Below, one piece after another: positions 6,225 to 64,000 of a DNA stretch of 64,000 bases. This DNA is from Mobula hypostoma (lineage: Eukaryota). Made by a program: the position numbers and the translations under genes. Numbering within the stretch: the first letter of the stretch is position 1; every line of letters begins with the position of its first letter. The DNA lies in assembly GCF_963921235.1 (NCBI RefSeq), contig NC_086120.1:34100001-34164000 (forward strand), given 5' to 3'. Under the pieces are notes generated by a model, which did not search any database, was not told the DNA's origin, and saw only the letters and a program-made list of their open reading frames with translations.

Positions 6225-6783
6225 GAGAGAGATGGCACCTTTGTGTATATACATCCTTGATGGCTGGTTGGCTGGTGCCAGTGATGGTTGGGCAGTTTTG
6301 ACCACTGATTTTAGAGCCTTCCTATCTGCCACAGTTTCTGTATCATGCAGCTTGCTTGAATGCTTTCTACTGCACGTCTGTAGAATGATGTGTATAGGAG
6401 GAAACCTACGTGGTCACAGGGAGAACATACAAAGTCCTTTCAGACAGTGATGGGATTTGAACCTGGGCTGCTGGTACTGTAAATTGTGCTAACAACTATG
6501 CTACAGAGCCGCCCCAACTTCAGTACATTTATCACTTCAGATAACTTCAGAGATACAGTACTGGAGGAGGCCATTTGAACTGGCTACCCTGATACTTAAT
6601 CTATTTGCAGTTCTTTACAGTTCCTTAAGATGAGGAACTGTGATAGTAAAACTAAGCCTTAATTCTGAGTTTGTTATTAACAATTTAGCTACATTAATAA
6701 TTGAAACACATTCATTATAATAAAATATATAATTTCACTTAACTGGTTATACCCACAATGATCACAATCCAATTACATAATCT

Positions 6784-6789
6784 TTTATT
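6784..6789 (-). terminator. Candidate polyadenylation signal of the REEP6-like paralog
   Basis: AATAAA on the minus strand downstream of the TGA at 6958. Confidence 0.5.
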
Positions 6790-6957
6790 TTTGATCTAAG
6801 ATGGTGCATTGCCAGAAACTTTGTGCACAATCTATTCAAACAACATTTCTTAAGGGAGGATGCATTTGGGACTGTACAGGAGTTTCACTTATGAAGTTCT
6901 GACTGGAAACACTTGGGATACCATCACCTCATTATTTCCCCATTCACAGTGGGCTTC

Positions 6958-7007
6958 TCACTTGATCAATGATTTGCCAAAGATGGCACTTAATTTATTT
7001 CTGCGTG
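6958..7007 (-). CDS. REEP6-like paralog terminal coding exon (A-RRNKLSAIFGKSLIK-stop)
   Basis: Acceptor ttttgtatttcag|CAC is near-identical to the REEP6 terminal acceptor; phase 1; AATAAA about 170 nt downstream. Confidence 0.68.
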
Positions 7008-8514: not shown

Positions 8515-8559
8515 CTTTTGGGGTTGAGGTGATGCCAATCATGTCCATTGTTGAGGAAC
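8515..8559 (-). CDS. REEP6-like paralog candidate exon 4 (GSSTMDMIGITSTPK), symmetric 45 nt
   Basis: Strong acceptor ttccctttttcttccag and donor AAG|gtaaga; open in phase 1-1; unique sequence; no homology support. Confidence 0.65.
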
Positions 8560-13734: not shown

Positions 13735-13993
13735 GCTGTCCATCGATTTTCGATGTTGACTGAGGCCTGGGCAAGGTTGTATGGAAGACTGGCAGTTGCC
13801 CATGTTGCAAGTCTCCTCTCTCCATGCCACTGATGTTGTCCAAGGGAAGGGCTCTAGGACACATACAGCTTGGCACCAGTGTCGTCGCAGAGCAATGTGT
13901 GGTTAAGTGCCTTGTTCAAGAACTGAGCTGAGGCTCGAACTAGCGACCTTCGGATCACTAGACTGACGCCATAACCACTTGGCCACGTGCCAC
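13735..13993 (-). mobile_element. tRNA-derived SINE nested in CR1
   Basis: Pol III A box TGGCCAAGTGG and B box GTTCGAGCC on the minus strand; duplicated flank ttgtcRtctat. Confidence 0.78.
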
Positions 13994-14651
13994 ACTATAT
14001 TAATTGTCATCTATATTAATGACTTAGATGATAATGTGGCAAACTGGATCAGCAAATTTGCAGATGACACCAAGATTGGAGGCAATGTGGACAGTGAGGA
14101 AGGCTATCAAAGCTTGCAGAATTTTCTCAATCATTTGGCAAAATAGGCTATACGTAGCAGATAGATTTTAATGTAAACAAGTGTGAAGTGTTGCACGTTG
14201 GCAGGACAAACCAGGGCAGGACTAAAGCAGAGAATGGAAGGGTGCTGAGATGTGCAGTAGATCTGGAATACAGTGCCATAACAAGAAAGTGGTGGCCCAG
14301 TTAGAGCCGTAAAGAGAGCTTTTGGAACTCTGAGATGGAGTGAGACTAGAAGTAGAGGTCATGGTTTAGGGTAAATAGTAAAATATTTAAGGAGAACATG
14401 AGGGGAAAGTTTTTCACTTAGAGGGTGGTGCAAGTGTGAAACAAATGGCCAGTGGAAGTGGTGAAGGCGGTTCCAATGCAACATTTAAGAGAAGTTTGTA
14501 TCGGTATGGAAGGCTATGGTCCTGGTGCAGGTAGATGGGACTAGGCAGAAAAACAAGGTGGTATGGATTAGATGGGCCAAAGTGCCTGTTTCAGTGACTA
14601 GATACTTTGTAAATTTTCATTCTCTAAAACTTAGTCCAACACTAATTTTAC

Positions 14652-14811
14652 CCTCTGGCTTGATATCATCATCTGTGGTTTCGAAAGATTTTCTGTTGAT
14701 TTCCTCCACCGTGGGTTTTGGCGTGTAGACGAAGGGATGGATGACCTTCGTGTAAATAATATGAGAACCATTCCAGTCAACGGGTGCCATGCACCACAGC
14801 AGAAGGAGAGT
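14652..14811 (-). CDS. REEP6-like paralog coding exon 3 ([54 protein letters not shown])
   Basis: [17 protein letters not shown] conserved; acceptor ctctgcag, donor gtaaaa; 160 nt; phases match REEP6 exon 4. Confidence 0.92.
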
Positions 14812-16169
14812 CTGCAGAGTGAAATAACAAGACTTTTACATACACAGCAAGCCTTCAGGCATGAGCAGGACAATAGATTGAGTGGCATTCCACTTGGATT
14901 TGACTTCCAGTCTAACTTAGCTCAATACAAAGTGCTGCAGTGTCTATTAAGTCTGGGTAAGTTAAAATAGGATCGTTATCTCATTTGTATTTATAGAGAG
15001 GGCCTGAGATGCTGTTTATACTGTCATGAGGTGTGGTAGATTGATCTTTCACCATTTCAGTTTTATTGTAACAAAAGGGATCTGCTGCTTGAACCCCATT
15101 AGGAAAGTTTGTTAGCTTTGATCCAACTTAAAACAGCAAAGGGAAATAATAAGCCATCTTGTCCAGTTCCTAATATTCTAATATTAATGTAATATTAAAA
15201 AGAACTTCAACAGTGCACCGTGTGACTTAGTGGATGGAATAGTGTAAAATAAGGGCACCATTATTTTGTTAACTAACATAACTGGGATATCTGTGTTTGT
15301 AGCTCAATGTTAATTAGTGATCCAGTGATTTTTCAAAGGCTTCACCAGGTAAAGCCCTTTCCATGTAGTCAAGGGAAATCACTTGAATCAACATAATTTG
15401 TGACCTTAGTGCAGAATTATATCATTTGGTCCTTCAACCTGGTCCACCATTCAATAAGAGTTTGGCTTCATTATCTCTCTGATTATTCCTTATGACCTTC
15501 TCCACTATAGTCCAAATTTTATCTGTCTTGTCTTTAAGTGTATAGTAATATACATTGAAAGTAACTAAGGCACTGATCCCTGTGCCTTCCTAATTACAAC
15601 TTCCAACCTAAAAATGACTTAACTCATTTTTCAGAAAGTTAGTTAACATTCTTTCTTTGTAAATTTATGTTATTACTAATTCCATGAGCTTCTGTCTTTC
15701 GGAATAATGACATGCCACTCCATCCAGTGCTTTTTGGAAATCCAAATAGATTACATCAACTGGCTCCCTTTATCCTCATGGCACCCATGCATTAAGAGGA
15801 GTTGAGTTCCGAGAAAACAGTCCGTATCACAATTTTATGTATAACACAAAGCTGCATTGTCAGTGCCTTATTCAAGAAATATGAGATAAAAATAAATTCT
15901 GTGTTAATGTATTTACATTTTCCACATTGTTTTTGTATCTGTATTTCAAATTCTAGGGTCATGAGTTGTGAATTCCACAAGGGCAGATTTCCATTACCTA
16001 AATGGCCATAACATGGAGATTGGCTGTGTCTTTATGACATAGGACAAGGTCCCACCCAACCTTTTTATGTTAATTGCCCTATCATTAAACGAGGGCTCTG
16101 TGAAATCCAGGATGTGATCCCCTAATATAGAGAATATTGGCTTTTAAATAGCACACTAAATCCTAAAAA

Positions 16170-17230
16170 AAGGGATAATGAGGTATAGTTCATGGGTTTA
16201 TGGACCCTTTAGAAATCTGATGGCAGAGGGGAAGAATATAGATCTTCAGGCACTTGTACCTCCTCCCTGATGGTAGTAACGAGAAGAGAGCATGTCCCGG
16301 ATGGTGACAGTTCTTAATGATGGGTGCCGCTTTCCTGAGGCACTAATTCTTAATGATGCCCTCAGTGGTAGGGAGTGTTGTGGCTGTGATAGAGCTGGCT
16401 GAGTCTACAATACTCTGCTGCCTCTTGTGATCCTGTACGTTGCAGGTGCCATACCAGGCTGTTTGCCACCAGTCAGAATACTCTCCACTGTATATCTACA
16501 GAATACTCTCTCACTGTATATCTACCGAGATGCAACACTGAGCGTCATAGGAAGTCATTTCTGCCTGTGGCCATCAAACTTTACAACTCCTCCCTTGGAG
16601 GGTCAGACACCCTGAGCCAATAGGCTGGTCCTGGACTTATTTCATTATTTACTGGCATAATTTACATATTACTATTTAAATATTTATGGTTTTATTACTA
16701 TTTAATTATGGTGCAACTGTAACGAAAACCAATTTCCCCCGGGATCAATAAAGTATGACTAAGAATCTATAGAATTTGTCTCTAACATATATTGCAAAAA
16801 ATACAGTAGGTCAACTTCCTTTAAAAAAAATGACGACTTTTAGCATCACATTATTCTAATCTTTATTTACACAATGAATAGTTTCAAGAAAAGTTAACCA
16901 AACACGGCACGATTTGCTTCTGAGTACAGCAGAATCAGAATCAGGCTTAATATCACCAGCATATGTCATGAAATTTGTGAACTTAGCAGCAGGAGTACAA
17001 TGCCATACATGATAATATAGAAAAAAAGAATTACGGTATGTATATATGTATATTAAATAGTTAAATTAAAAATAGTGCAAAAACAGAAAAAAAAGTGAGG
17101 TGGTGTTCATGGGATCAATGTCCATTTAGAAATTGGATGGCAGAGGGGAAGAAGCTGTTCCTGAATTACTAAGTGTGTGCCTTCAGGCTTCTGTACCTCC
17201 TTCCTGATGGTAACAATGAGAAGAGGGTTC
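16170..17230 (-). mobile_element. Cluster of Rex1/Babar-like LINE 3' fragments (also about 7630-8160, 10200-10500, 43050-43520, 44250-44620, 56215-56480, 62345-62650)
   Basis: Recurrent segment reading RRYRSLK.HT..FRNSFFP on the coding strand; family assignment from memory. Confidence 0.65.
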
Positions 17231-17686
17231 TTTGATGTGATTGACTGCTCCGCCAACTCACTAGGTGCCAGTTTTGCCTTTAGATGATGACTGGCAGATG
17301 CAGGCACCAACAAAGGAAAGCCTTGCTACGGAAATCACTAGACTCATATCAACATAGAACCTATGGCCTCACTTACAAGGACTCTACTGCTCATGCTCCC
17401 TGTATTTATTTGTTTGTTTCCATTTGGTTTTTGTTTGTACTTGCACAATTTGTATAGTTTCTTATTGATTCATTGATCTACTGAGAATGCTATGGGGACA
17501 TAAGGTGTACGTAATTTGATAATGAATTTACTTTGAACTTTAGATGTTTACAGGGAGATTGCCCCAGTTCAAAGGGAGGAGCTGTTGTTTCACGGCTGAC
17601 TACAATTTCTGATCTCTTGTGTCCACTATTTTATTCAGCTGAAATTAAATGAGGACCAGAAGACAGAGGTGAATATTGTTACATAC

Positions 17687-17825
17687 CTTCAATTTATAAA
17701 AGGCTGGAAATGCATAGAAGAGGATGCTTGCCACACATTCAACGATAGCAAATGTGCCATAGATCACCCAATAACTAAGCCACTTCAATTTTTCCTTTTT
17801 ATCGGCACTTTCAATAGCTAAAACT
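17687..17825 (-). CDS. REEP6-like paralog coding exon 2 (VLAIESADKKEKLKWLSYWVIYGTFAIVECVASILFYAFPAFYKLK)
   Basis: 139 nt like REEP6 exon 3; 23/46 aa identical by hand alignment; acceptor ttctcag, donor gtatgt; inside supplied ORF 17645..17980. Confidence 0.93.
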
Positions 17826-18489
17826 CTGAGAATAATCAAAACATCAAAGGCAGTTACAGCAATTTTGCATTTGATTATTTGTATAAACAAATTAGAAAAC
17901 TTTTTATTTTCCTCCTTCCTCACCTTTTTACTTTTTACCTTAACATGGACATGAGATAGCCATTTAGCCCCTTGCAGCATTCAATAAGATCAAGAATATC
18001 GCCAACTTCATTAGGATATATTTTCCGATAATGAAAATATCCCGGTAACAAAATCAGATTATTAAAAAATAATCTATGGACCAGGAACAATGACGGTATT
18101 ATTCTTCGCTATTGCCCTAAGTGGTGGTAATGGTGAACAGCTATCTCGAGTCACTATTTTTGCCTTGAACAACTTGCCCTTCATGCTATTGGGTAAGGGG
18201 TTCCAGAATACAGACCAAGCAACAAACCTATGATCTAAAACATCCCCTAATTATCATTAACAATTGAAAGTATCAGTTGCGGATTTTATAAAAACGTTCA
18301 AGATGTTCACCACACTCCAAATTTTTTACCATCTTCAAACCCACTCTTCATGAGCCTGATCAATGTTATCAGATGCTTAGACCATGAGGAAAGTCACAGC
18401 AAAATTTGATTTTTCTAATTTGATACATTTATTCACATCAATATAAGATTCAGTGCTTAATCTGCATGCACAATATATTCATGTCATCT

Positions 18490-19312
18490 CCAGCCACAGG
18501 CAATGTCTGGAGGACTGGCAAGTAGCTAATGTTGTTCCATTATTCAAGAAGGCAACCAAGGATAATCCAGGAAACTATAGACTGGTGAGTTTCACGTCAG
18601 TGGTAGAGAAGTGGTACAAGAGAGAATTCTTAGGGATAGGGTTTATGAGCATTTGGAAAACCATGGCCGAATAGGGAGAACCAGCATAGACAAGTCATGC
18701 ATAAACATGCAGGACAAGTCGTGTCTTATTCACTTGATTAAGTTTTCTGATGACATTACAAGAGTGATTGAAGAAGCTAGAACTGTGGATATTGTCTACT
18801 GGATTTTAGTAAGGCATTTGACAAAGTCCTTCATGGGAGTCTCATCCAGAAGATTGAGATGCATGGGATCAAAGGTGAATTGGCTGTTTGGATTCAGAAC
18901 TGGCTTGTCAATAGAAAACAGAGGGTAGTGGTCAGTGGGACTTATTCTAGCTGGAGGTCTGTGATTAGTGGTGTTCTGCAGGCGTCTGTACTGAGATCTC
19001 TTCAGTTTATGAAGTATATCAATGATCTAGATAAAAATGTAGATAGATTGGTTAGTAAGTTTGAAAATGATATGAAGATTGGTGGTGTTGTAGATAGTGT
19101 GAAAAACTGACAAAGATACAGCGGGATATAGACCAGTTGTCGATATGGGCAGAGAAATGGCAGATAGAGTTTAGCCCAGCCAAGTGTGAGATGTTGCACC
19201 TTGGGAGGTCAAATTTAAAGAGACAATATGCAGTTAAATGCAAAACCATTAACAGTGATGTTGAGTTCCAAGTTCATAACTCCCTGAAAGTGGTTACACA
19301 GGTTGATAGAAT
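18490..19312 (+). mobile_element. CR1 LINE RT fragment
   Basis: EDWQVANVVPLFKK..PGNYR; WIQNWLVNRKQRVVV; YINDLD..SKFENDMKIGG. Confidence 0.9.
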
Positions 19313-19556
19313 AGGTAACGAATTTCAACATGTTTTAACTTAACGGCCAAAAGCACAACGTGAAAGGATTAAATGATAAGAGAGTTATTTGAACTTTCTA
19401 TTCTCTACCTGGCTCAGGTGTGTTACCAGGAATGACTGCTGATGGAAGTAAAACTTATGGGTCACAATTGATATGAGAAATGCACTACGGACAATGGTGC
19501 AGTGATGTGAATCACTACCCTCTGCTGGTACTTTACAGGCAGTGTATTGTGTATGG

Positions 19557-20347
19557 TAGGGGTCCCCAACCCTTTTTGCACCGCGGACCGGTTTAATATT
19601 GACAATTTTCTTGCCGACCGGGTGGGGGGGGGGTGTTAATCACGACTGGAATATAGGTGATAAGTCAACTATAAGTCACTCAATTTCATTTCTAAAAGGG
19701 TTTATCTAATGAATTTAATATTAGACACACAGCGCATATTTTCCTCGTATGAACATATAAAGTCATTGCAACACACCAATATCGCTGAATCAGTGGGAGC
19801 CCTGGGCTTGTTTTCCCGCAACAGCATGGTCCCATCGAGGGGTGATGGGAGACAGCGATACTCGAAAGGGGTTCCTTATGTCCAGTCTATTCTGCAATTT
19901 AGTTTTCATTGCATTCATTGCAGAAAACTCTGCTTCGCAGCGATATGGAAGCAACGTTTTCAGTGCTTTTGTGGCTATCTCAGGATATTCAGCCTTGACT
20001 TTGATCCAGAATGCCAGCGGAGATGTTATGTCAAACCTACTTTTCAGCCCACCGTCATTTGCAAGCTTGAGGAGTTGATCTTTTTCCTATGCTGACATGG
20101 ATGATTCACTGGGGACATTCACAAATGGGTCACGGACCCATTCCTCTGCACGTCTTGGGTCACTTGCATCTTGGGTCACTGATGACCTCGCGTGTGTTCA
20201 AGCTCAACAGTGCGTGACAGGGAATGAGGAAAGGTGAAGCTGAGTCATATCGCTTCATATTGCCAAATTATATCATTTCCTTGCAGCCTGGTAACACATG
20301 CTTTGCGGTCCTGTACCGGTCCGCGGCCTGGTGCTTGGGGACCACTG
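19557..20347 (-). mobile_element. Non-autonomous hAT (Charlie/Buster) DNA transposon with C-terminal transposase remnant
   Basis: TIRs TAGGGGTCCCCAA / TTGGGGACCACTG; perfect 8-bp TSD gtgtatgg. Minus strand reads FWIKVKAEYPEIATKALKTLLP..CEAEFS..KTKLQNRLD..QAQGSH* (hAT dimerisation domain). Confidence 0.93.
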
Positions 20348-20426
20348 GTGTATGGCTGTGTGATGGGTTTGCCTGCAAGAGTAGGTGTTGTTGGGTGGGT
20401 TGGAGTAAGCATCATATCTACTTAGG

Positions 20427-20815
20427 AACACACACAAAATGCTGGAGGAACTCAGCAGGTCAGGCAGCATCTATGGAAATGAACAGACAATTGACTTTTC
20501 AGGCTGAGACCCTTCTTCAGGACTGACAAGAGAGGGGAAAGAACACAGATGCCAGAATACAAAGGTAGGTGAGTGAGGGGAAGAGAGGCTAGCTGGAAGT
20601 TTATACAGTAGGTATTGACAGGTGGATGGGACAGGTCAAGGGCTGGAGAAGAAAGAATCTGATAGGAGTGGACTATAGGAAAAGGGAAGGAGGAGGGGAC
20701 CCAGAGGGAAGTGATAGGCAGGTGATAGGCAGGTGAGAAGTCGTAAAAGGTCAGAGTGGGGAATAGAGGAAGGGGAGAGGGAATTTGTTTCCCGAAAGGA
20801 GAAATCGATATTCTG
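20427..20815 (-). mobile_element. Penelope-like pLTR/3'UTR fragment with hammerhead motif (20488-20525)
   Basis: Homologous to 61780-62185; minus strand reads CAGTC-CTGAAGA-A-GGGTCTCAGCCT-GAAA-AG-TC-AATTG. Confidence 0.82.
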
Positions 20816-21079
20816 TTTAGGGTTGCACAACTATTGCTAGTATCTGCTGTGTATTCATTAAACCTATTGTATATTACTGTCACTCTTATCACTTCCCACT
20901 AGGTATGAAAGAAACTGCTGTTTGCCCCTCTCCTTATTTCTATCCACAACTCTGTCTAGTTGGGTGATTTCATATTGGTAACAGGTGACCACCATTCAGT
21001 GTCTTACCACAGAGTGATCTCTGGGCTGAGAAGGGATGTACAGCCATAGTGGTGACAGCCGCCCATGGAAGTGAGTAGG

Positions 21080-21560
21080 TAGTCTATGTTTTGGGCCGAG
21101 ACCCTTCTTTGGGAACGAGAAGGAAGGAGGAAGATGCCAGAATGAAAAGGTGGTGGGGGAAGGGAAAAGAGGCTAGCTGGAAGGTGATTGGTGAAGCCAG
21201 GGGGGGTTAAGAGCTGGAGAAGGAGGAATCTGATAGGAGAGGAGAGTGACCCACAGAAGAAAGAAGGAGGGGACCTGGGGGAATTAATAGACAGGTGAGT
21301 AGAAGTAAAGGGTTAGAATGGGGAGGAATTTGATTATCAGAAGAAGAAATCGATATCCATGCCATCATGTTGAAGGCTACCCAGGCAGAATACAAGGTGT
21401 TGCTCCTCCACCCTGAGGTAGCCTCATCTTGGCACAAGAGATGGCCATGGGCTGACATCTCAGAAAGGGGGTGGGAATTGGAATTAAAATGTTTGGCCAC
21501 TGGGAAGTCCCGCTTGTGGCGGTACTCATCGGCGTAGTCCCCCGATGTAGAGGAGGTTTA
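21080..21560 (-). mobile_element. Penelope-like fragment (endonuclease C-terminus plus degenerate pLTR)
   Basis: AKHFNSNSHPLSEMSAHGHLLCQDEAT is homologous to ORF 61621..61812. Confidence 0.8.
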
Positions 21561-24500
21561 AGATGACACTGGTGAATCTCAGTGGCCTCTGGCAGGTGGC
21601 CGATGAAACAAGGGAAACAACTAAACACTTTGTTAATCACTCTTTTTCTGGTAAATGATCATCGCAAATGGTCTGTAACTTTCCTTCAGACTTGGAGGTA
21701 ATTCAGTGTGGCAGAACCCAGGCAAGTCGAGGCAGTGGGCCCATCACCAGGTGTGAGGAAGACCAGAGGTTTGATCAATTTAAGCACTTGGCCAACTTAG
21801 AAAGGCTGAGTACAGGCTGAATCGAGGCGCTGAGATCCAGGCCTCAGAGCCTACCCGAGTGATTCAACCTGATATTTGGACGATGATTTATGCACCTGGC
21901 TAGAGGAAAAGGTCAGGGTGTCAGGGCCCAAGGCACCTCTCTGCTCCGCACTGCACTGAAGTAAGAGTCTGGGGCTGAGCTCTCTGTGGACTTCCATTCA
22001 AAATACTATTTGCTTGTGTTGTTTGCATGATTTGTGTTTTTTTTTCCTTCTGCACAGTGGGTGTTTGACAGTCTTTTTAATGGGTTCTTTCAGGTTTCTT
22101 TGTTTCGTGCCTGCTGGTTAGGAGACAAATCTCAAGGTTGTATAATATATGCATACTTTGACATTTTGAACTTGTTTCATCATTCAGTGAAATCAACACT
22201 GCATTAACTATGCTCAATTTTCTTCTCTTCTTAAGCCCATCACCTGTACTGAGTCACAGTCCTCCGTCCTGAGCCAGTCATTTAAGTTTTCCCAGGTGTA
22301 GCCCATCTTTTTGGTGTATCCAACCTCTTGCAAGGATGAGGTCTTTGGAGCTTTTGATGGCATTTCTGTAGTATTGTTTTTTAAAAAAAATAGTCCCAAG
22401 TCCAACCCTCCCCTTTTCACGTCATACTTGGGAGCAGCCAAACAGAATTATTTTTCTTCCCAGGCATCTATTTCAGTGAACATTCATATTGCAATTCCTT
22501 TGTGTGAACAAGTGCTTTAAGTCTCTTCCAATGCTCTGCCTCAGATTTTTAAGGATTACCTTTGTTTGTCCTATTATACTCCCCCACATCGTACTCAAGG
22601 GGAAGTGTGGAGGAATGGATAACTACAGCCCTGTTCCTTTCATTATTAAAAACCGTGATCAGATAAACCTTGTGCATTCCAGGACCAACGTGGAGTAGCT
22701 AGAACTGTTGATAGCTCAGAGGAACTTTAATCAGAGTATTGTGTAATTGCAATTAAACTCTCCAGCTGTATATTCCAACCTTCCAGTTATGAATGCGCAA
22801 TACTGATTCTGCACGCACTCTTAATTTCTTTGAATCAGCACTGTCCCTTGCCTTTCACCAACTAGATTGCCCTTTTACCCTATAGTGGATGATCCTATAT
22901 CCCCTATATCATATTTAAGTTTTTATGATATTATTCTGTATGTGATACTTTTTCAGGACATTTGAGTGGCATATGCTGCAAGACTAGGTAAATGGGGCAC
23001 AAGCTCACACTAACCAATCTCACAATTCCTACTCTTCACCGAAACCACCAATTAATTCCTTAAATAAGTTTACCATCCTAAACTCCTGTCAATTAAGCAA
23101 TTCTTTCTGCTGTTCTGTTACCATTTATAAAAAAAGATCAGAAACTCCTCCAGAAATTTACCATTGACAGATAGTTGACTGCCAGTTTCTAAGGTAACTT
23201 CATTCTGTACACTTGTGTAATTAAAGGCCTGTGCCCACATCCACTATTGTTTCATTTAGTTTTCTGCAAGTTTTGAGGAGGTTGCAAGCACTTCATGTGA
23301 GCTGTTGTTTATCATCTGCTCTGAGGATGAAAATTTTTTAAATCTTCATTAAAATGCAAATATTCTTAGTTACTGCAGTATCCAATAATAGTATTCAGGA
23401 AAAGAAAATTGATCCATTCCAGTTGGAAGCAAGATTGTTTCTTTGTAAGAGAACTTGTTCAATTATTTGTTTTAAATATGTGACTCCGAAAACAAGGTGC
23501 AGGAGCATATTATTCACTTCCTTGACCTTGCTCAGCCACGCAATAGGATCAAGGCTAAGCCAATCTTAGATTTACTTTCATCTTCCTACTCAATCCTTCA
23601 GAAATCTGCGGCCCATATAGAAGGCTTCTGTATCATTAAGATACAGAATTAATGAGTTGCTGTGGCAGAGAGTCAAAGCAAAACACAAAGAGCAAATGGT
23701 CTCCTTTACACTGTTATTGTTGGATTCTTCTATGAACCCCCAATAGGTCTGGAATCCAAAAGTTTGTCATAGACTTTAATATACTTAAGACTCCAATTCC
23801 AAACCTCCTTGGGTGCGATTTTCCAAAGATCTGCAACTCCGAGAGAAAAAGAATTCTCAGTTTACGCTTAATGTCCTCAAGATCCAGATTCTGTCTGCCA
23901 GTAGAAAAATCTTTCTCTCACTGCCCATTGCCTCATGTTTTCAAAATGGGATTGTTTCTCAATCTTCTGACCTCCAATCTGCACAAATTTTCCTTAACAG
24001 CGAGAATAATTTAGTAAATCTCCATGCAAAATATGGAGACAAAAATTGCTTGCTGTGCTCTGGGTTCAGGTTCAAGATCTTTGTAACTGTAACAAACTTT
24101 CCCCAACTACAACCAGATGGCACAGACTCAGAATACAAATATGTCCCTTCAGAACAGAGATGAGGGAGTATTTCTTTAGGCAAAGGAAGCCATTGCCACA
24201 GAAGGCTCAGGAGGCCATGTCATTGGGTATATTTAAAGCATAGGTTTAAATTTTGTTTAGTGAGGGCGTAAGAGATTACAGGGAGAAAGCAGGAGAATGG
24301 GATCGACGGGAAGAATAAATCAGCCATTATAGAATGATGGAGCAGACTCGATGGTCCGAATGACCCACGCTCCTATGTCTTATGGTCTTCAAGAAAGTTA
24401 ACTAAATTAAATGCAAGTTATGTATTCTTTCTTGTAAAGAAAAATTATAGTAAGTTTTTGTTCCCTCATCCTTGCAGCAAAGGCTACCATTCCATTGTCT

Positions 24501-25239
24501 CCAATTACATTTTGTATTGTTACACAGTTCTCCTAATCTGTCTGCATTTCAACAATATCTATTTTTCCTACCAGTGGATAATCTCACAACTATTCACATT
24601 CTATTCAAATTGATGGTTTAATTCCTACCCCCCACCCCCATACAGGCAGTTTCCTTCTCTCCTCATTTAGTAAAATAACTTAAAAGCACAAGCTTAGATC
24701 TTATTACATCCCTTGAGAGAAAACAAAATTAAATCCTATAGGGATTAATGAAATCTTGCCATTGTACTTCTTCCCCTCTTAACGTAGCAGATTTGCTTCT
24801 GATGAGTTAATTTACAAATTCATTATCGTCAAAACAATGCAATTGTAGAGCAGCTAATCAGTAAACTTTAGATATTTATAAGTAACCAAAGCTATCAAGA
24901 AAGTGCAAAGGTTGACAACATATCTGAATAAATTAATCATTGGCATCCTTTCACAGGATTGAAATGTTACTCCACATGACCTTTGGATGTGCTGTCGACA
25001 ATTCATCCATTGTAGGGCTCAATGTGGAAGGAAAACTGCAACTGAATTTGAAGCAACAATTTATTGGTGACTTAATTTGGTGGTGGTGGTGGGGGGTGGT
25101 GTTGGAAAAACACTCATCTCAAAAACTCCAGACTTGGCTAGTGGAGGAAGGGATGGACAGAGTGAGAGGAAGCTAGTTACTATCTTCATTTCTTATTAAA
25201 ATGTAACTTTCCATTGAGGAAAGTACGTCCTATACTTAC

Positions 25240-25370
25240 GAAAAGTAGGCTGGATAGAGGAAAACAATCACGTTAAACCAAGTGAACAAGGATGGCCCAA
25301 ATCCAAGTAGTGAACACAAGGCAACCAAAGCGATCAAAGTGCGGACAAATCGAGACACACTCAGAGACAT
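25240..25370 (-). CDS. REEP6-like paralog coding exon 1 (MSLSVSRFVRTLIALVALCSLLGFGPSLFTWFNVIVFLYPAYF-S), homologous to REEP6 exon 2
   Basis: GFGPSL...FLYPAYFS matches GYGASL...FVYPAYFS. Same phase-2 donor TC|gtaagt. ATG has A at -3 and an in-frame upstream TGA. Confidence 0.88.
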
Positions 25371-25550
25371 CGTTTCTCTTTTCGAATCCTCTGTTCAGCT
25401 CCAACTGTTACACCATCTCTTGGTGGTGAAGGATGCGTTACTAGGCTGCGGCAGGAATCAAGTGACATCACAGAAGGATTTATGTGGTCAGAAACGAGAG
25501 CCTAGCATGTGTGGGCATCAGAAACTGGGAACTCAGTACACACAAATCAG
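25371..25550 (-). promoter_or_regulatory. Candidate compact promoter/5'UTR of the REEP6-like paralog
   Basis: MYB-like CCAACTGTTA 25401-25410, X-box-like GTTACTAGGCTGC 25437-25449, CRE-like TGACATCA 25463-25470. Confidence 0.4.
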
Positions 25551-28028
25551 ATGAGCGTTATAACTTTATTTTGTAACACTTCTGAATAAAGTATTTTTGG
25601 AGAAAAAAAATTAGTTGGGATAACTCTCAAGTGTGATACAAGCAATCCATCTTCCAAAATTCCCATTCTCTTATAATTAAGGGATTAAAACTTTAAATTT
25701 AGCATTACTTTTAACCCATTTTTTCTTTCTAATTTAGGATTATGGATCAGGGTTTCAGCTATATAAAGAAACAACGTTTTTTTCTGAAAAGTTGCTGGTG
25801 TATCTTTTCTGCTCAGCATGGATTACAGATACATCAACATCTCCAGTGTACCTCCCCCACTCTAGCACCATCAGATCAAAGTAAATGAATATATTCCAGA
25901 GTTTAAAAAATAAATTACTCAAATACAATGCTTTTTTAAAAATTGATCTTACTTTAACAAATAGAGGTATTACTCCAGTGCACATGAATAATTAAAACTT
26001 CAACCCTATTGATCGATAGAGCAACAAAGCATTGCCTTCAAGCTCTTTCAGAAATTAGGGTCGACAGATTTCTTTGGAATCTACAATCATTAACAGTGTG
26101 GAAAACACTTAAGTGAATTGCACTTTACATTTATACTTGTACATTTTTGCTACCCGAGGCTCACAGTTTTCTCTTTTGATTCAGCATCTGGAACTTAAAT
26201 TTGACTGCCCTAAAATATAAAGTTGTGTTGACCAACTCTCCCCTCCCATTGTTTATCAAAAAATGCTTTATTTATTCTAAAGATATACATGTACTTATGA
26301 CGAGAAAAATCAGCAATTCAAATGTTTTCAAAAAAATTTACAGGAATGCTACAGCAGTTTCCAGTCCCACTGTGATATCAGTGCACTGTAATGATACACA
26401 ACTTGCACACACTCCCCAGTCACAATATCATTTTGCCTCCATTTCTCATCCCACTGGAATACCAGCTGGTGAGAACATTACATTAAAAATCTACATTTCC
26501 CAATAACACCTCTCGAAGGCTCAGCAGTCTCATTAAGATTGCCTGCAAGTTAAGCAAATGCCCTGAAGAGACACCCACTCAGTACAGTTCAATCTACAAA
26601 TTCCCTTGAATTAAATGACAAGAGAGAATCTGTAGTTGCTAGAAATCACTTGAAATAAATAACTAGGTTTTTTTTTTAAACATACGATATTATGACTTTA
26701 AAAGTATTTTCTTATACCTCACACTCCATGTAAAACATTATGAAGGAATTGTGCAGACACCAACACTCCTTCTAAATCACATTATTGTGGAGGTAATGCT
26801 TCTTTCAGCTACAACAGTTTGGGTAACTGAACTTTTTGAGCTGATCCTAAAAAATGACCTACATCACCAACCAAACCCATCCTCGCACCAGTACTGAACA
26901 AAACCTCCCCTCATGAAACAGCAAGGTTTTAAATAGCAATAGAGATGAGGTTACATGGTCTAAAGTTGGCTTGATACATTTTCACATTTAGTAATGGGGA
27001 GGGAAACAAATAATAATGTTCATCTGCCACTCACACTCAAACCTAAATGTTAATAAAAGGCCAGAATAAATGTACTAAGTTCATAACTATCCAGTCTATA
27101 AAATCCCAAAACAAAGTTTTTTCCAGAAATATCCATTTTTGGATCCATAGGCAAATTTTAAAAAGTGGGAACAATTTCATTGAGTCAGCCTACAATGCAG
27201 GATATGACAGGGTTTTAAATTATCGGCATGAGTAAATACAATCACATACAAGTCAGCTGAAGAATATCACTGAGAATTCCTCATAATTAAATGGAGTTAC
27301 TATGCACAGATTGGTTCACCGTTAGCCATCCAATGTCTTGGCATGTAGAACCGGATGGGAAAGTACATTCAATATTTTAATCTTAGTTATTAGGTGGGAC
27401 CACAGGATGAATAAATCACTTTCAACATATCTACTTAGCTAGCAAAAATGAAACCAAGCCATTTCATCCTGTTCACTTCATATCCAATTAAAAAGGATAT
27501 CTATTATCTATCGCCAGTGAAAGTGTTATTGTAAGGTACAACTCAACATTTTCAGGGTACCATGCAAAAATGAAATTATACCAACATCAAAAGGTCTTTT
27601 TCCTGACAATTAGTGCTAAAATTGAGCTTGTGGAATGTTAACATTTGACAAATCTACTACACCTCTGGGGTTAAACAAATCAATGTGGTAATTTTTAACT
27701 GTATATTATAATGCAATGTATAAATCCAGTTTAGACCATAAGAGGGGCCATTCTTCTTTGTTGCTTCAAAAAAAAACTTTAGTCTTTTGCTACAAGAACA
27801 TTGTATAAACCAAGTAGAAAATTTATTGAATTTGAAAAGTAAAATACTTGAAAATGAGAGTGTCTGCTTCTGAAAGAAAAAAGTAGGTTATATTAGATTC
27901 AAATGTCAAATCATACTTAGAAAATCTAACTATAATCTTTTCCTTTCAGAGACTGTTGCTTCTATGCCAGATTTACAGTAAGTCTTCTCTTTTCTTGTGG
28001 GATTAGCTTCATCTTGCAGGCAGTCAGT
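25550..28028 (-). other. reep6: Probable REEP6 3'UTR with AATAAA signals near 26270 and at 25565-25570
   Basis: Unusually repeat-poor AT-rich stretch downstream of the stop codon; minus-strand AATAAA hexamers. True end unknown. Confidence 0.55.
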
Positions 28029-28069
28029 TTATTTTATGGTCCTCAGTTGTTTTCGCCTTTTATCAAGTG
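28029..28069 (-). CDS. reep6: REEP6 terminal coding exon (A-LDKRRKQLRTIK-stop); exon-5-skipped protein is 185 aa
   Basis: Acceptor tttgtattacag|CA, phase 1. Followed by about 2.5 kb of repeat-poor AT-rich sequence. The acceptor and IK-stop end resemble the paralog terminal exon. Confidence 0.7.
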
Positions 28070-30214
28070 CTGTAATACAAAAGAATTAATAAAATCAGAA
28101 ATATCTTGAAATGTAATATGGCTGCTATATTTGCATGTAGAGGTAGGAACAACTTGGGGGGGGGAGGGGGGCGGAGATGGCTGCAATGTTATCAGTAGTT
28201 TTTATAAATCACCAGGTACATCTTTAACAATGGTCAACTTGTTCCATTAAAAAAAAGTTAACTTGTCCCACTCCACCCAAAGTCTCTCTGGCTATCCATC
28301 CCATAGGGTGATGATGGTTCCTTTCAGTCAGTTAGTGGGGTAACTACCCCACTCCCCAGAAAGGAACAGCGTGTGCGTGAGTGGATTTTAGATGAGTAGA
28401 GGGTTGCACAGGTCCAGACCCACCCTCTCGATATCCCCTCCCAGATCCAGTGGCATGATGGGGTTCAAGATGGCTGGGGCAAGTTCTGCTGCAGTGAATG
28501 GCCAGACCAAGCTTCGATACAGGGGATGCCCTTTCCGTGCTTCACGGCACGTGTTTGCTAGATGGCCGTTGACCCTGACAGGGTTCATCCGCCCAAAGTG
28601 ATCAATGTATATGTCACCCTGAGATTCACTTCCTTGTAAGCGTTCAGTGGAATAAATACAACAGAATAAATGAAAAACTACAAAGACTAACAATGAGAGA
28701 CAAACTGAGTAAATATGAAAAATGGTAAATAGATAAATAATACTAAAAGCATGAGCTGTAGAGGACTTGAAAGTGAGCCCATAGGTTGTAAAATTTGTTC
28801 AGTGTTGAGGGGAGTGAAGTTTTCCCCACACTGGATCAGGAGCTTGATAGTTGAAGAACAATAACAGTTCCTGAATCTGCTGGTGTGGAACTCAAGCAGG
28901 GCTTTGAAATAGTAACATAGCTTTCTTTTCCTGACCACGTTCCGCTATAGAAGTAAAGCTCCAAAGCCCATCAGTTCATATACCTTTTAAAATCCAATAT
29001 ACCTACTACTGCAAAATTCAATCTCCATGCTCTGTCTCAAGTAGCACTTGTAATTGTGCCAATCTTGTTGGACATCATCCTAAGCAAACTGATGCATATT
29101 TTATGGCATCCCATCAAAAGGCAATTAGATGCATAGATAATGAGAATATAACATGGGTACTACATATGATCTCTACAAAATCCATAATCCAACTAACAAT
29201 AATTGTTATCTCCCTCACATATCATTGATTGGTAGATTCTCTTTTGAAGAAAGACAAGTGATTAGGCTTATATCCACTGGAGTTCAGAAGAATGAGAGGG
29301 ACATAATTAAAACACACAAATCTGGAGGGTTTTGACAGAGCAGATGTGGATGTTTCTTCCTCTGGGAGAATCTACAATTAGGGGTTACAGTTTAAAAATA
29401 AGGGCCAGTCTATTGAAGACAGACAGAAGACAATTGTTTAAAAAAAAATTCTGGACTGCTGAAAATCTCCAAGGACAACTTGAATGTTTTTTTTAAAAAA
29501 AAACAGATAGATATAGATTCTTAGTAAGCAAAAGGGTGAGACATGACTCTGTAGATGGGGACGCAAGGTTAAGGTCACAAATACTAATCACAATTTTAGT
29601 AAATAGTGGATTATGCTCAAGAGGCTGAGTAGGCTATTATTACTTCTAATTTATATGCTTATATGCATTTCATTATACAGCCACTCAACGTGCCATAAAT
29701 TAGCATATTTCACTGTGGGCAAGGAAACAAATCTCACACCAACACATTTCTATTCAGTGTTTAACCACACCAGAGGCTGGAAATGATGAACAATAATTAT
29801 TTTTCTTTGCAGACAGGTCAACAGCTTCAAGCAAGTTGGTAGGAGGAATATAGACAATTCAGAGGGAAAAAGAGTTACTTACCCTTGAGGATTGAAAATC
29901 TGGCACTCAGTGCCTAAAGTTATGGATGTGGAAACTGTCAAAACATTTAAGATGTGTCTGCTAGAGCCCTTCACACCTATGGGTTGTGGGAGTAACTCAA
30001 TTGGTTGCAATTTTTAAGCCAGCATGACATAATTATTTTCAAAACCTGCATAATTGCTCACTCCGCTATTGAAATCAAAGATTGAAGTTTTTCCAACATT
30101 TAATTGTTTTTCACTGGTTTATAGAGACATTAAAGAATAATACAGGTCAAATCTCAACAAGGAATATGTTATTAAATTGTTAAAAATAAACATCTGGATA
30201 AATTAAAAAAAAGA

Positions 30215-30425
30215 CAGGCAAGAGAGACCATAGATGCAGGAAGTCTCAATCAACACACAAAATGGCGAAGGAAGCAGATCAGGCAGCATCTGAGGAGGAA
30301 AATGAACCACCAGCACTTTGGGCCAGGACTCTTAATCAGGACTTGGGTCTCGGCCTGAAACATCGGCCGTTCAATTTCCTCCACAGATTCTGCCTGATCT
30401 GCTGAGTTCCTCCAGCATTGCGCAT
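30215..30425. mobile_element. Inverted pair of Penelope pLTR fragments
   Basis: Two oppositely oriented copies joined at the hammerhead region near 30342. Confidence 0.72.
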
Positions 30426-30973
30426 GGACAAGTAACAAGACCAGAATAATGACAATCCCCCTGTGGGGAAAAATCTCGTCCTAATGTTGGATGACTTAGG
30501 ATGGCAAGCACAATTGGAGTGCATGCAGAAGCATCGAGAGCAGGCAGAATTGTGAAATGAATTGATGAATAAATGTAAAAGCTTAAGGAGAATTGGACAT
30601 GTAAAATTGTACATGTAAAATTGTACAAACGCTTGCTTCCAATTTCCACAATGTGCTTGGGCATCTGGCCACAAGTGCAATTCATAAGGGTTAATTATTT
30701 ACCAATAAACTTATGACCCATGAGGGCAAGACTGGCCAGAAGCAAATGAGATGGCTAATTTGTAGAGCTTTGGAAGTCAAACATGTTATTAACATATGAA
30801 GTTTACCAAAAAACATGTTGGATAGATGGGAAAAACAATTCGAAAGCAAGTTAAAAAATCTAAAAGTTAACAATTAAATGCTTGGCTGATACTGAACAGC
30901 AGGAAATGGGTGCAGGTTTTTTTTTTAAAAAAGCCAAATGCAACTTACCCTTATATCAATACCCTTCCTGCCA

Positions 30974-37884: not shown

Positions 37885-37958
37885 AGATGTTTCAGCTAAC
37901 TGTTTAGGTCGTGCATCTGGCCTTACGAGGCTCTTGCTGTTAGATAGAGTCTGCAAAA
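37885..37958 (-). CDS. reep6: REEP6 alternative exon 5 (VLQTLSNSKSLVRPDARPKQLAETS), likely homolog of the rod-isoform REEP6.1 exon
   Basis: Acceptor gtcttgctttag in phase 1 gives VLQTL..., like the VLQVL... start of the human REEP6.1 insert. Donor gtatgt (74 nt) or gtaatg (78 nt, end 37881). Confidence 0.8.
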
Positions 37959-38020
37959 CTAAAGCAAGACAAAAATGAGAAAACATTAATATAAACTGAA
38001 ATGTATCTAAAATCTCACCA

Positions 38021-42173: not shown

Positions 42174-42342
42174 CTTCTCTGGTCACGCATTCTGCTGCAT
42201 CCAAAGCCTTGCTACTGAGGTCATTAACAGCACTATCCACTTGGGCATGATGCTTCAGGAACAGAGGGCGGACAATTCGCTTATAGATGATCTGAGAACC
42301 GTTCCACATGACTGGTGCCATGCACCACAGCAGGAAAAGACA
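42174..42342 (-). CDS. reep6: REEP6 coding exon 4 ([56 protein letters not shown])
   Basis: LLWCMAP-WNG and RPxFLKH motifs plus C-terminal amphipathic helix region; acceptor ttgcctgcag, donor gtcagt; 169 nt, ends phase 1. Confidence 0.97.
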
Positions 42343-42571: not shown

Positions 42572-42748
<177 letters not shown>

Positions 42749-49045: not shown

Positions 49046-49189
<144 letters not shown>

Positions 49190-60762: not shown

Positions 60763-60877
60763 CTGTGGCCAGATGGTATTTGCGCAAACCCGTCTTCTTC
60801 TCAATTTTCTCTAGAATGTTTGTGAAGAAGTTCTTCTCGTCCAGAAATTTTTCCAAACGCTCACGTAAGGATGGCAT
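60763..60877 (-). CDS. reep6: REEP6 coding exon 1 (MPSLRERLEKFLDEKNFFTNILEKIEKKTGLRKYHLAT-G)
   Basis: Hand translation matches the REEP5/6 (DP1/Yop1) N-terminus. 115 nt, phase-1 donor G|GTGGGT, compatible with exon 2. Head-to-head with a PCSK4-like gene, as for human REEP6. Confidence 0.93.
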
Positions 60878-61561: not shown

Positions 61562-62185
61562 GGAAATAGCTTCGCCAAGCACCACCTGCCTACGGCCGGC
61601 TGAAAAAGCGACATCTCTCAGTGGCCACCACCCATTTTAGTTCCACTTCTCGTTCCCATTCTGACATGTCAGCCCATGGCCTCCTCTACTGCCGCGATGA
61701 GGCCACACTCAGGTTGGAAGAGCAACACCTTGCATTCCGTCTGGGTAGCCCCCAACCTGAATGGCATGAACATCGAGTTCTCGAACTTTCGATAATGCCC
61801 CCCCTACCTTGACCATCCCCCCATTCCCATTTCCTTCCCTTAGTTTATCACCTTACCGGCCCATCACCTCCCTCTGGTGTTACCCCCCTTCCCTTCCCTT
61901 TCTTTCAAGGCCTTCTGTCCTCCTATCAGATTCCCCCTTCTCCAGCCCTTTATCTCTTTCACCATTTGACCTCCAAGCACTTTACTTCACCCCTTTCCCT
62001 CTCCTGGTTTCAGCTATCACCTACCACCTTGTAGTTCTTCCTGCCCTCCCCCGCCTTCTTACTCTGACTTCTCATGTTTTTCTTTCTCAAGTCCTGATGG
62101 AGGGTCTCGGCCCGAAACGTCGACTGTTTACTCTTTTCCATAGATGCTGTCGGGTCTGCTGAGCTCCTCCAGCATTTTATGTGTG
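61562..62185 (+). mobile_element. Penelope-like element 3' fragment (endonuclease C-terminus, pyrimidine-rich UTR, hammerhead-bearing pLTR)
   Basis: VATHFSSTSRSHSDMSAHGLLYCRDEATLRLEEQHLAFRLGSPQP matches the PLE endonuclease C-terminus; followed by the recurrent pLTR sequence. Confidence 0.85.
62090..62125 (+). ncRNA. Minimal type I hammerhead ribozyme motif (best-preserved copy; A9 reads G)
   Basis: AGTC-CTGATGG-A-GGGT(CTCG)GCCC-GAAA-CG-TC/GACT: stem I AGTC/GACT, stem II, palindromic ACGT stem III, GUC site ending at 62121. Confidence 0.75.
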
Positions 62186-62989
62186 AAACTTGTTTTCACA
62201 CATAGTGGTTGTTGCCAGGGGTGGTGGTGGAGGCAGGTACGATGTTTAAGGGGCCTTGGATCGATATGCAGAGAATGGAAGAAAATGAACAACAATTTTG
62301 ACAGATGAAAGTAGAGTAGATAGAGTTAGAAGTAGAACATACCCACGACATGTCCTCTTCTCATTGTTACCATCAGGTAGGAGGTACAGAAGCCCGAAGG
62401 CACACACTCAGTGATTCAGGAACTGCTTCTTTCCGTCTGTCATCCGACTCCTAAATGGGCATTGAACCCATGAACACTACCTCACTTTTTAAATTATTTC
62501 AGTTTTTGCACCATTTTCACTGTAACTATTTAACATACACATATAAACTTTAATCGTTTTACTTATTTTTTCCCAAAATGATCACGTGTTGCATTGTACT
62601 GCTGCCGCTGTTAACAAATTTCACGACGTTATTAAACCAGATTCTGACTCTGAAACCGCCTTCCTCTCACCCACAAATATCAGAAAATGTTGGAAGTCTG
62701 GGGGGGGGGGGGAAGCTACAAAGGATGCTATGTACACTGACCAGCTGTAGAAAGAGTGTTAACGTTTCAGGTGTAGGCTCTTTGTCAGAACCAGGGCAAT
62801 TGTAAAATTATTAGATTTCTTGTGTTAAAGATGTTAGACCAAAGTTATTGAAGTGCTGTGGCGCTGTTGCCGCACCTCTGACAGCCCCGTATCAGATATT
62901 TAAATGTAGAAGGCGAGGGACCAATTGATAGTAAACGGAAATAGTATGGAGCCCTTGGCATGGGTCTGCAACTCCCTAACTCAATGTCA

Positions 62990-63660
62990 ACTCTCGCTCC
63001 AGTGTACCTGGCCGTGACGTCACTGACTGTCAACTGCCTTCCTGAAATTCACCTGGCTGTGACGTTGCCTGGAAGACGTCACCATCGCCGACCGTGGCTG
63101 GTGAGGTCACCGGCCGTCAACCGCCCAGCTGGCCCTCGCTCGGTGACCGTTGCAGCCGGCCCGGGTGGGGTCGGGCTGAAGGGCAGGTGAACCATCGGCT
63201 CTTCCCGAAGAGAAACCGCAGGGCGCGCAGCCCCCCCCACCCTCACCCCCCGGGGGCGGAGTTGCTCCTGAAACTTTATCGCGCCGCCTCCTCGCCCTGG
63301 AGCGGGAGAGCATGTCCCAGAGTATTTAATGAGTGGCGGGCGGTTAGTGTCCCTCCACCCCTCCCTCCCTTGTGCCGGACATGGCAGAAGATAAAGTGAC
63401 GTAGTTCGCAGTAGTGGTCACAGCGGGCGGGGAATTCGCAGCCTCGTCCCCCCCTCAACCCCTTCCCCACCGGTATGACCCGAGTCGGCCGCCTGTTGCT
63501 GCTCGCCTTCCTCAGCCACTTCCTCGGCGGCGCCGGCGGCCGGGAGCTCTACACCAACACCTGGGCGGTGCGCATCTCCGGTGGAGCGGAGCACGCCCAG
63601 AACATTGCCTCTAGGCACGGCTTCATTAACCTGGGACGGGTAAATGGCTCTCTAAACCGA
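62990..63660 (+). promoter_or_regulatory. CpG-island promoter of PCSK4-like gene with perfect CRE (TGACGTCA 63015-63022), CRE-like sites and GC boxes
   Basis: High CpG density; TGACGTCA, TGACGTTG, AGACGTCA, TGAGGTCA and TGACGTAG motifs; GGGGCGG boxes. Confidence 0.75.
63475..63639 (+). CDS. pcsk4: Proprotein convertase first coding exon (signal peptide and start of S8 prodomain); PCSK4 by synteny, furin-like in sequence; gene continues beyond the window
   Basis: MTRVGRLLLLAFLSHFLGG...YTNTWAVRISGG...ASRHGFINLGR with phase-0 donor CGG|gtaaat at the conserved intron position; divergent from REEP6. Confidence 0.82.
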
Positions 63661-63774
63661 ATAGTCAGTGTACCGGTGGTGGAGTGGCTCATCCTGCGCT
63701 TCCACCAACCCAGCAACTGTATCCTTTTATTTTGACGCCTTGCGTTTGGGTTCGCCTCTTTGCAGCAGAGCCAG

Positions 63775-63870
63775 GTTTCCAAGATGAAGGGTCTCGACCC
63801 GGAATGGTGACTGTCCATTTCCCTCTACAGATTGCTGCCCGAATCGCTGAGTTCCTCTAGCAACGTGTTT
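63775..63870 (+). mobile_element. Degenerate Penelope pLTR in PCSK4 intron
   Basis: gatgaagggtctcgacccggaatggtgactg...gctgagttcctctagca. Confidence 0.68.
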
Positions 63871-64000
63871 TTTTTCCCCGAATCTTCCCCCCCCCAAACT
63901 CTTCTCTAGAAAGGTTTGCACCCCGTAGTACTTTAAAAGCAAAGAAATTCACTCAAAGCTCCCGGCAACAGTGTGAAAGGCTGTGTTGATGATCTTGATT

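Follow-up and report, generated by a model that had tools for sequence, protein, structure and literature searches.

In a 64,000-nucleotide window of the Mobula hypostoma genome (contig NC_086120.1, positions 34,100,001 to 34,164,000; all coordinates below are those of the window), two REEP genes lie in tandem on the minus strand, REEP6 upstream and, downstream of it, a paralog that is real, transcribed and protein-coding, probably a tandem duplicate of REEP6, and found across cartilaginous fishes. Its protein lacks the N-terminal amphipathic helices of REEP6 and keeps the transmembrane (TM) core and the proximal part of the C-terminal amphipathic helix (APH). Judging from its sequence, its modelled structure and its likeness to studied relatives, the paralog probably still stabilises membrane curvature, inserted as a hairpin protein of the REEP5/6 type. 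The gene was known beforehand from prediction, annotation pipelines having called it 'REEP6-like', and our translation exactly matches the NCBI model 'receptor expression-enhancing protein 6-like [Mobula hypostoma]' (P0001).

The window is free of runs of N and of assembly gaps. Canonical REEP6 (185 aa) is encoded by five exons spanning 60877-28029 (-), all introns being GT-AG, and the paralog (174 aa) by five exons spanning 25370-6958 (-) with canonical GT-AG splice sites; two of its coding exons, 8559-8515 and 7007-6958, lie beyond 14652, where the range of an earlier note on this DNA ended. The exons measure 115, 94, 139, 169 and 41 nt in REEP6 and 131, 139, 160, 45 and 50 nt in the paralog, and intron positions and phases are common to both genes for the three core exons. 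The first paralog exon corresponds to the REEP6 exon-2 region, lengthened by ~10 codons at its 5' end and by two inserted codons at the TM1-TM2 turn. The paralog scored 80.4 bits against Pfam family PF03134 (TB2_DP1_HVA22; cut-off 27.2), with profile positions 1-77 of 77 covered.

Transcription was assessed in X1 and X2, two M. hypostoma sequencing runs that we guess to be RNA. Every sampled word of paralog exon 3 was present in both, and X1 and X2 contained 83% and 70%, respectively, of the sampled words of 6765-7007 (last exon and 3' untranslated region, UTR). A 729-nt contig from X1 begins 35 nt ahead of the paralog ATG, its first 166 letters lying on 25405-25240 and leaving the genome exactly at the splice donor. 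Its length equals 166+139+160+45+219 nt, which suggests an mRNA of five exons that runs to the AATAAA at 6789, a match of length only, as just 25405-25240 was placed. REEP6 contigs start at the spliced end of the last coding exon (28071) and end at 25583 (X1), 25560 (X4) and 25769 (X2), and the paralog mRNA starts only ~150-180 nt past the REEP6 3' end. Between the REEP6 polyA signal (25570) and that start (25405) lie ~165 nt without a CpG island (CpG observed/expected ratio 0.38). Such tight spacing invites read-through or transcriptional interference and, given the exon phases common to both genes, hybrids would be in frame if read-through followed by chimeric splicing let REEP6 transcripts take up the paralog exons as an alternative 3' module. 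We consider this very unlikely: the REEP6 contigs end at 25560-25769 and the paralog contig begins separately at 25405, and no contig bridging the two genes, nor any joint, was reported among the assembled contigs, which drop rare forms.

Orthologs starting MS(V/L)xVSRF were found among skates, an electric ray and sharks (Rhinoraja, Leucoraja, Narcine, Cetorhinus and Scyliorhinus), besides a partial Rhincodon model in which the first exon is absent, and a profile search covering 1.84 billion representative sequences yielded models from the chimaera Callorhinchus that lack the first exon but bear the family signature; the best non-paralog matches to the profile were REEP6 proteins. Open frames are present in 8 species across chimaeras, sharks and rays, the Callorhinchus and Rhincodon models being partial. 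The gene order REEP6, paralog, UPF0449-domain gene is the same in Mobula and Scyliorhinus, the last belonging to the C19orf25 family, which is located close to REEP6 in humans. The paralogs formed one clade (support 100/100) in a maximum-likelihood tree, on a very long stem of 2.47 substitutions per site, placed among REEP6 sequences; approximately unbiased tests rejected neither a clade of the paralog with chondrichthyan REEP6 (p 0.057) nor one with REEP5 (p 0.23), and the tandem synteny favours an origin from REEP6. We searched the accessible literature for an account of a REEP6 paralog in sharks or chimaeras, and no relevant paper emerged.

Between ray and shark, the paralog is 51% identical and REEP6 81%, protein divergence of the paralog is ~2.5 times that of REEP6, and the two proteins are 39% identical within Mobula. 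Identity within the paralog family varies strongly along the protein, from 100% in the PVDWNGS link, 78% in TM3 and 74% in the turn and TM2 to 66% in the proximal amphipathic helix, 46% in the distal helix and 26% in the tail. This uneven conservation, together with frames open across chimaeras, sharks and rays, points to purifying selection on a functional protein, and the gene, which changes more quickly than REEP6, appears to be old and under constraint; chimaeras and elasmobranchs split, as a rough estimate, ~400 million years ago. The long stem branch and the raised divergence are what a decaying or non-functional duplicate might display, but with canonical splice sites, frames open in all 8 species (two from partial models), conservation that tracks structure and spliced RNA, decay or an annotation artefact is highly improbable, and we rejected both the pseudogene and the artefact readings on the grounds of conservation and spliced RNA.

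One departure from REEP6 is at the N-terminus. As the earlier note had observed, REEP6 exon 1 (60877-60763) has no counterpart in the paralog gene model, and the ATG lies in a 5' extension of the exon-2 homologue. The ATG precedes by ~31 nt the point equivalent to the REEP6 exon-2 acceptor. The RNA contig moreover carries an in-frame TGA before the ATG, so that no upstream exon, which could otherwise have restored the N-terminus, can extend the protein in that transcript; contigs drop rare isoforms, and a minor alternative N-terminal form could escape. The paralog starts only 6 residues before TM1, as do all six full-length orthologs, and the N-terminal amphipathic helices, for which the two halves of the REEP6 exon-1 region have hydrophobic moments (muH) of 0.64 and 0.66, are absent. 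Within the 10-codon extension, V-x-R-F resembles the V-x-R-x-F/Y that closes exon 1 of REEP5/6, a likeness that may point, if weakly, to an origin of the extension in the end of exon 1 rather than in a former intron. Comparison by eye of the DNA of the extension with the REEP6 intron-1/exon-2 boundary gave only short out-of-frame matches, which were dismissed as chance. Separately, M. hypostoma REEP6 isoform X2 (P0219; 182 aa) has an alternative first coding exon (MSWRLEKF…), which was not located in the window.

The C-terminal side gave a different picture. The post-TM4 peptides compared (42270-42190 in REEP6, 14739-14665 in the paralog) hold one and three prolines, respectively, and paralog exon 3 is indeed, as had been noticed, 9 nt shorter than REEP6 exon 4 (160 versus 169 nt), a net difference that results from a family-wide deletion of 4 codons and one extra codon regained in Mobula. 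The segment is, however, homologous and diverged and not, as the earlier note had it, replaced. The added proline in KP is found in all elasmobranch copies (KT in Rhincodon) and precedes the distal helix; the Callorhinchus model does not have it. That in TP occurs in Mobula only, and matches the TP, with its second proline at the same spot, of the functional S. japonicus Yop1 APH peptide, which contains ...RPYITPYV... (PMC7835363 Supp. Table 3). The 21-residue paralog segment WNGSHIIYTKVIHPFVYTPKP aligns residue by residue with the active Xenopus REEP5 APH peptide, SNGATLIYKKIVRPFFLKHEG (PMC7835363 Supp. Table 3), every hydrophobic position being kept. The 18-residue hydrophobic moment of this proximal helix is 0.27 in the paralog, 0.27 in REEP6 and 0.22 in the Xenopus peptide, with a mean hydrophobicity of 0.67 in the paralog versus 0.55 in REEP6 and a net charge of +2 versus +4; other orthologs are closer still to REEP5 here (…IIRPFFYKHKP, muH 0.23-0.36).

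AlphaFold2 (AF2), run with a 146-sequence alignment (mean predicted local distance difference test score, pLDDT, of 79; an 8-sequence run with pLDDT 52 was discarded), predicted helices at residues 7-21, 25-49, 53-79 and 85-98 (TM1-4), 105-119, 123-138 and 161-173. Helix 105-119 lies in a block with pLDDT 88-89 and is followed by a break at T-P-K, helix 123-138 has pLDDT ~70, and helix 161-173 is of low confidence. Superposed on residues 35-168 of human REEP5, the model gave 3.3 Å over 136 residues, and its fold matches to REEP3/4 were confined to residues 30-136 with TM-scores < 0.5. The proposal that both amphipathic regions had been lost is hence upheld for the N-terminal one, missing from the six full-length orthologs and preceded by a stop in the RNA, but is not supported for the proximal C-terminal helix, given its moment, equal to that of REEP6, and the predicted AF2 helix at 105-119; a predicted helix of similar moment is among the things that the earlier note had named as refuting its view.

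The distal helix is 4 residues shorter than that of REEP6 across the family, with a moment of 0.39 in the Mobula paralog versus 0.37 in REEP6 (0.39-0.52 in other elasmobranch paralogs, 0.36 in Callorhinchus). In published work, one group calls this helix CTH (C-terminal helix) and relates both it and the cytosolic loop to oligomerisation (PMC10162974), and a second group counts it within APH-C (PMC11455953). Several points here weigh against a paralog that still shapes membranes. Mean hydrophobicity of the distal helix is -0.01 in Mobula versus 0.16 in REEP6, and -0.21 in Callorhinchus, and in Mobula the helix is acidic, with a net charge of -4. The Mobula post-TM4 sequence is also the most derived, with the near-invariant Arg of 'RP' changed to His and an extra Pro. 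The REEP5 V156P substitution, in the distal helix, is counted as an inactive APH-C in human cells (PMC11455953), and the 4-residue family deletion falls about the REEP5 V156 region, where the alignment is ambiguous. Absolute moments are, besides, low in all REEPs (kinked helix), and the measure discriminates weakly.

In the TM2-TM3 loop, KEDDT of REEP6 is KKEKL in the paralog, as previously noted. The reversal of charge that had been claimed for this loop applies to rays and skates (net charge +1 to +2, versus -2 to -3 in REEP6) and not to sharks, which stay at -1 to -3; what the whole paralog family has, in place of the conserved acidic K(E/D)DDT(K/Q)W loop of REEP5/6, is (E/D)K(L/M)KW, found in no non-chondrichthyan protein among 277 examined. 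All four membrane helices, TM1 included, and the PVDWNGS link are retained. Next to the 2-residue insertion at the turn, TM2 is only 64% identical to REEP6. E49, E73 and K90 are invariant across the paralog family and, by position, we take them to correspond to the buried polar triad E60/E104/K121 of Yop1p (TM2/TM3/TM4). After the distal helix the tail is only ~35 residues long, with a basic segment bearing an S-x-I-F core.

Overall, the paralog shares with REEP6 the tandem REEP6/C19orf25-like neighbourhood, the four TM helices, the PVxWNGS link and the proximal amphipathic helix, but differs in having no exon-1 helices, a 2-residue insertion in the turn, a replaced 'DDT', a distal helix shorter by 4 residues, one more small constitutive exon and a basic tail. 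It resembles an N-terminal deletion mutant of Yop1p that still makes tubules (PMC10162974), yet in the paralog the loss of the N-terminal helices is natural, not engineered, and accompanied by loop and C-terminal helix changes. With REEP1-4 it has in common a short N-terminus without amphipathic helices and, in ray and skate copies, a non-acidic loop; unlike REEP1-4, which have no TM1 and a long APH-C with a disordered tail (PMC11455953), it keeps TM1, and neither the absence of TM1 nor the long disordered C-terminal tail that mark REEP1-4 was found in it. This architecture, with TM1 kept, the N-terminal helices absent and the loop motif swapped, fits the definition of neither REEP5/6 nor REEP1-4. 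REEP5-like proteins with a short N-terminus also occur among other eukaryotic sequences (P0039, P0065).

How the absent N-terminus would act can be judged from work on the N-terminal amphipathic region of Yop1p and REEP5, called nAPH or APH-N (PMC10162974, PMC11455953). The nAPH (Yop1p residues 1-32) is dispensable for Yop1p tubules, with or without TM1 (PMC10162974), and residues 2-51 of human REEP5 (two APHs and TM1) direct the protein to the tubular endoplasmic reticulum (ER) and not to puncta (PMC11455953). REEP5 without these residues moves to puncta in a manner dependent on APH-C (PMC11455953), a behaviour compatible with the paralog, which lacks the two N-terminal helices and has in rays and skates a basic instead of an acidic loop, having converged on REEP1-4, with isotropic curvature and small ER-derived vesicles in place of tubules. 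Such convergence is nevertheless quite unlikely, since the paralog retains TM1 (AF2 helix 7-21), absent from the REEP5 deletion and from REEP1-4, and has no long disordered tail of the REEP1-4 kind, and since Yop1p lacking the N-terminus alone still supports tubules (PMC10162974).

Along the lines of the earlier note, it is also conceivable that shaping activity is gone and that the paralog serves chiefly as a modulator, pairing with REEP5/6 through the membrane domain and weakening or redirecting their assemblies. The lost N-terminal helices, the changed loop motif and a distal helix that is short and, in Mobula and Callorhinchus, poorly hydrophobic would suit that role, as would the findings that the APH is not needed for REEP dimerisation (PMC7835363) and that REEP1 APH-C mutants drag wild-type partners along (PMC11455953); contig depth for the paralog in X1 is ~ten times below that for REEP6, a poor measure of expression. 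We nonetheless regard this as rather unlikely, for the proximal APH is retained with an equal moment and a confident AF2 helix, nAPH is dispensable in Yop1p (PMC10162974), and TM2, the main Yop1 dimer contact, is altered by the 2-residue insertion and 64% identity, which argues against simple pairing with REEP6.

According to the reading we prefer, that of retained curvature activity, the gene would encode a 174-aa reticulon-homology protein of the REEP5/6 type that inserts into the ER, where the intact membrane core and the proximal amphipathic helix would stabilise high membrane curvature. The derived loop, distal helix and TM2 side are parts linked in published work to REEP self-association, loop and C-terminal helix tuning the strength of oligomerisation in Yop1p (PMC10162974), and the lost N-terminal domain is the part linked to tubule-versus-vesicle localisation; a difference in assembly or location would thus be expected, and not a complete loss of activity. 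By analogy with these proteins, oligomerisation and sub-ER localisation of the paralog probably differ from those of REEP6. The interpretation given in the earlier note is only in part borne out. A membrane activity with altered assembly is what we infer, next to the observed gene structure, expression, conservation, helix propensity and hydrophobic moment.

Taken alone, the paralog is a lineage-specific variant of a gene family, and its immediate surprise is modest. The mechanism by which REEP/Yop1 proteins generate curvature is disputed, however, between wedge insertion of amphipathic helices and oligomeric scaffolding, and a recent proposal has the N-terminal domain determine whether the protein goes to tubules or to vesicles. 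The paralog amounts to an evolutionary experiment on these very parts, with the N-terminal helices gone, TM1 and the proximal helix kept, and the loop and distal helix rebuilt. A bolder and doubtful proposition is that this REEP6-derived protein, without N-terminal helices, with a swapped loop and a short distal helix and kept for ~400 million years, works unlike both known REEP classes; it might then form REEP1-4-like vesicles despite its TM1, or cap or tune REEP5/6 oligomers. If true, evolution would already have supplied a separation-of-function allele with which to address the contested roles of nAPH, the cytosolic loop and the C-terminal helix.

Features of REEP6 and its tandem paralog in the window (window coordinates)
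Feature	Position	Strand	Remarks
REEP6 exon 1	60763..60877	-	N-terminal amphipathic helices; 38 codons and first base of codon 39; no paralog counterpart
REEP6 exon 2	49047..49140	-	
REEP6 exon 3	42590..42728	-	KEDDT at 42703-42689
REEP6 exon 4	42174..42342	-	169 nt; its end matches the spliced loose contig end at 28071
REEP6 last coding exon	28029..28069	-	41 nt
REEP6 3' UTR	25560..28028	-	AATAAA at 25570-25565; contigs in X1, X4, X2
Paralog 5' UTR in RNA	25371..25405	-	in-frame TGA at 25397-25395
Paralog coding exon 1	25240..25370	-	131 nt; ATG, TM1, TM2 up to PAYFS
Paralog exon 2	17687..17825	-	139 nt, as REEP6 exon 3; cytosolic loop, TM3; KKEKL at 17800-17786
Paralog exon 3	14652..14811	-	160 nt; TM4, PVDWNGS, proximal C-terminal amphipathic helix, hinge, distal helix
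Paralog residues 103-123	14713..14775	-	proximal amphipathic helix, aligned to Xenopus REEP5 APH peptide
Paralog residues 124-143	14653..14712	-	distal (CTH-like) helix
Paralog exon 4	8515..8559	-	45 nt; Ser/Thr-rich linker, low confidence in AF2
Paralog exon 5	6958..7007	-	50 nt including stop; basic C-terminal tail, conserved S-x-I-F core
Paralog 3' UTR	6784..6957	-	up to AATAAA at 6789-6784

Some further observations concern the two genes and their surroundings. REEP6 has an alternative exon at 37894-37959 (-), outside the 185-aa model, that encodes VLQTLSNSKSLVRPDARPKQLA. In Hemitrygon and Rhinoraja, the long REEP6 isoforms (196 and 203 aa) include an additional exon that is almost the same as this one, and the Mobula exon also recalls the retina-type REEP6.1 exon of mammals; the small exon 4 of the paralog is at the equivalent position. 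The terminal exon of Mobula REEP6 (28029-28069), encoding ALDKRRKQLRTIK, is unlike the A(L/M/V)KLxxEK-type ending of most chondrichthyan REEP6 (for example ALKLHLEKNKDK and AMKLNSEKDKSN) and resembles the start of the last paralog exon (ARRNKL..., 6958-7007), a likeness that could stem from shared ancestry or from exchange between the neighbours.

Upstream of REEP6 exon 1, 62000-64000 is a GC-richer stretch (52% GC, CpG observed/expected ratio 0.71), likely the promoter island of REEP6 or of the gene that comes next. In REEP6 intron 4, a short element at 30200-30600, bordered by (TG)n-like loose ends, has contig depths between 2,000 and 10,000 in each of the four runs, one of which comes from another organism and is probably DNA; the element is probably a very abundant repeat or a short interspersed nuclear element (SINE). 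Lastly, the paralog introns contain, on the opposite strand, remnants of long interspersed nuclear elements (LINEs) in the form of reverse-transcriptase-like open reading frame fragments at 18453-19343 (+) and 13979-14146 (+).

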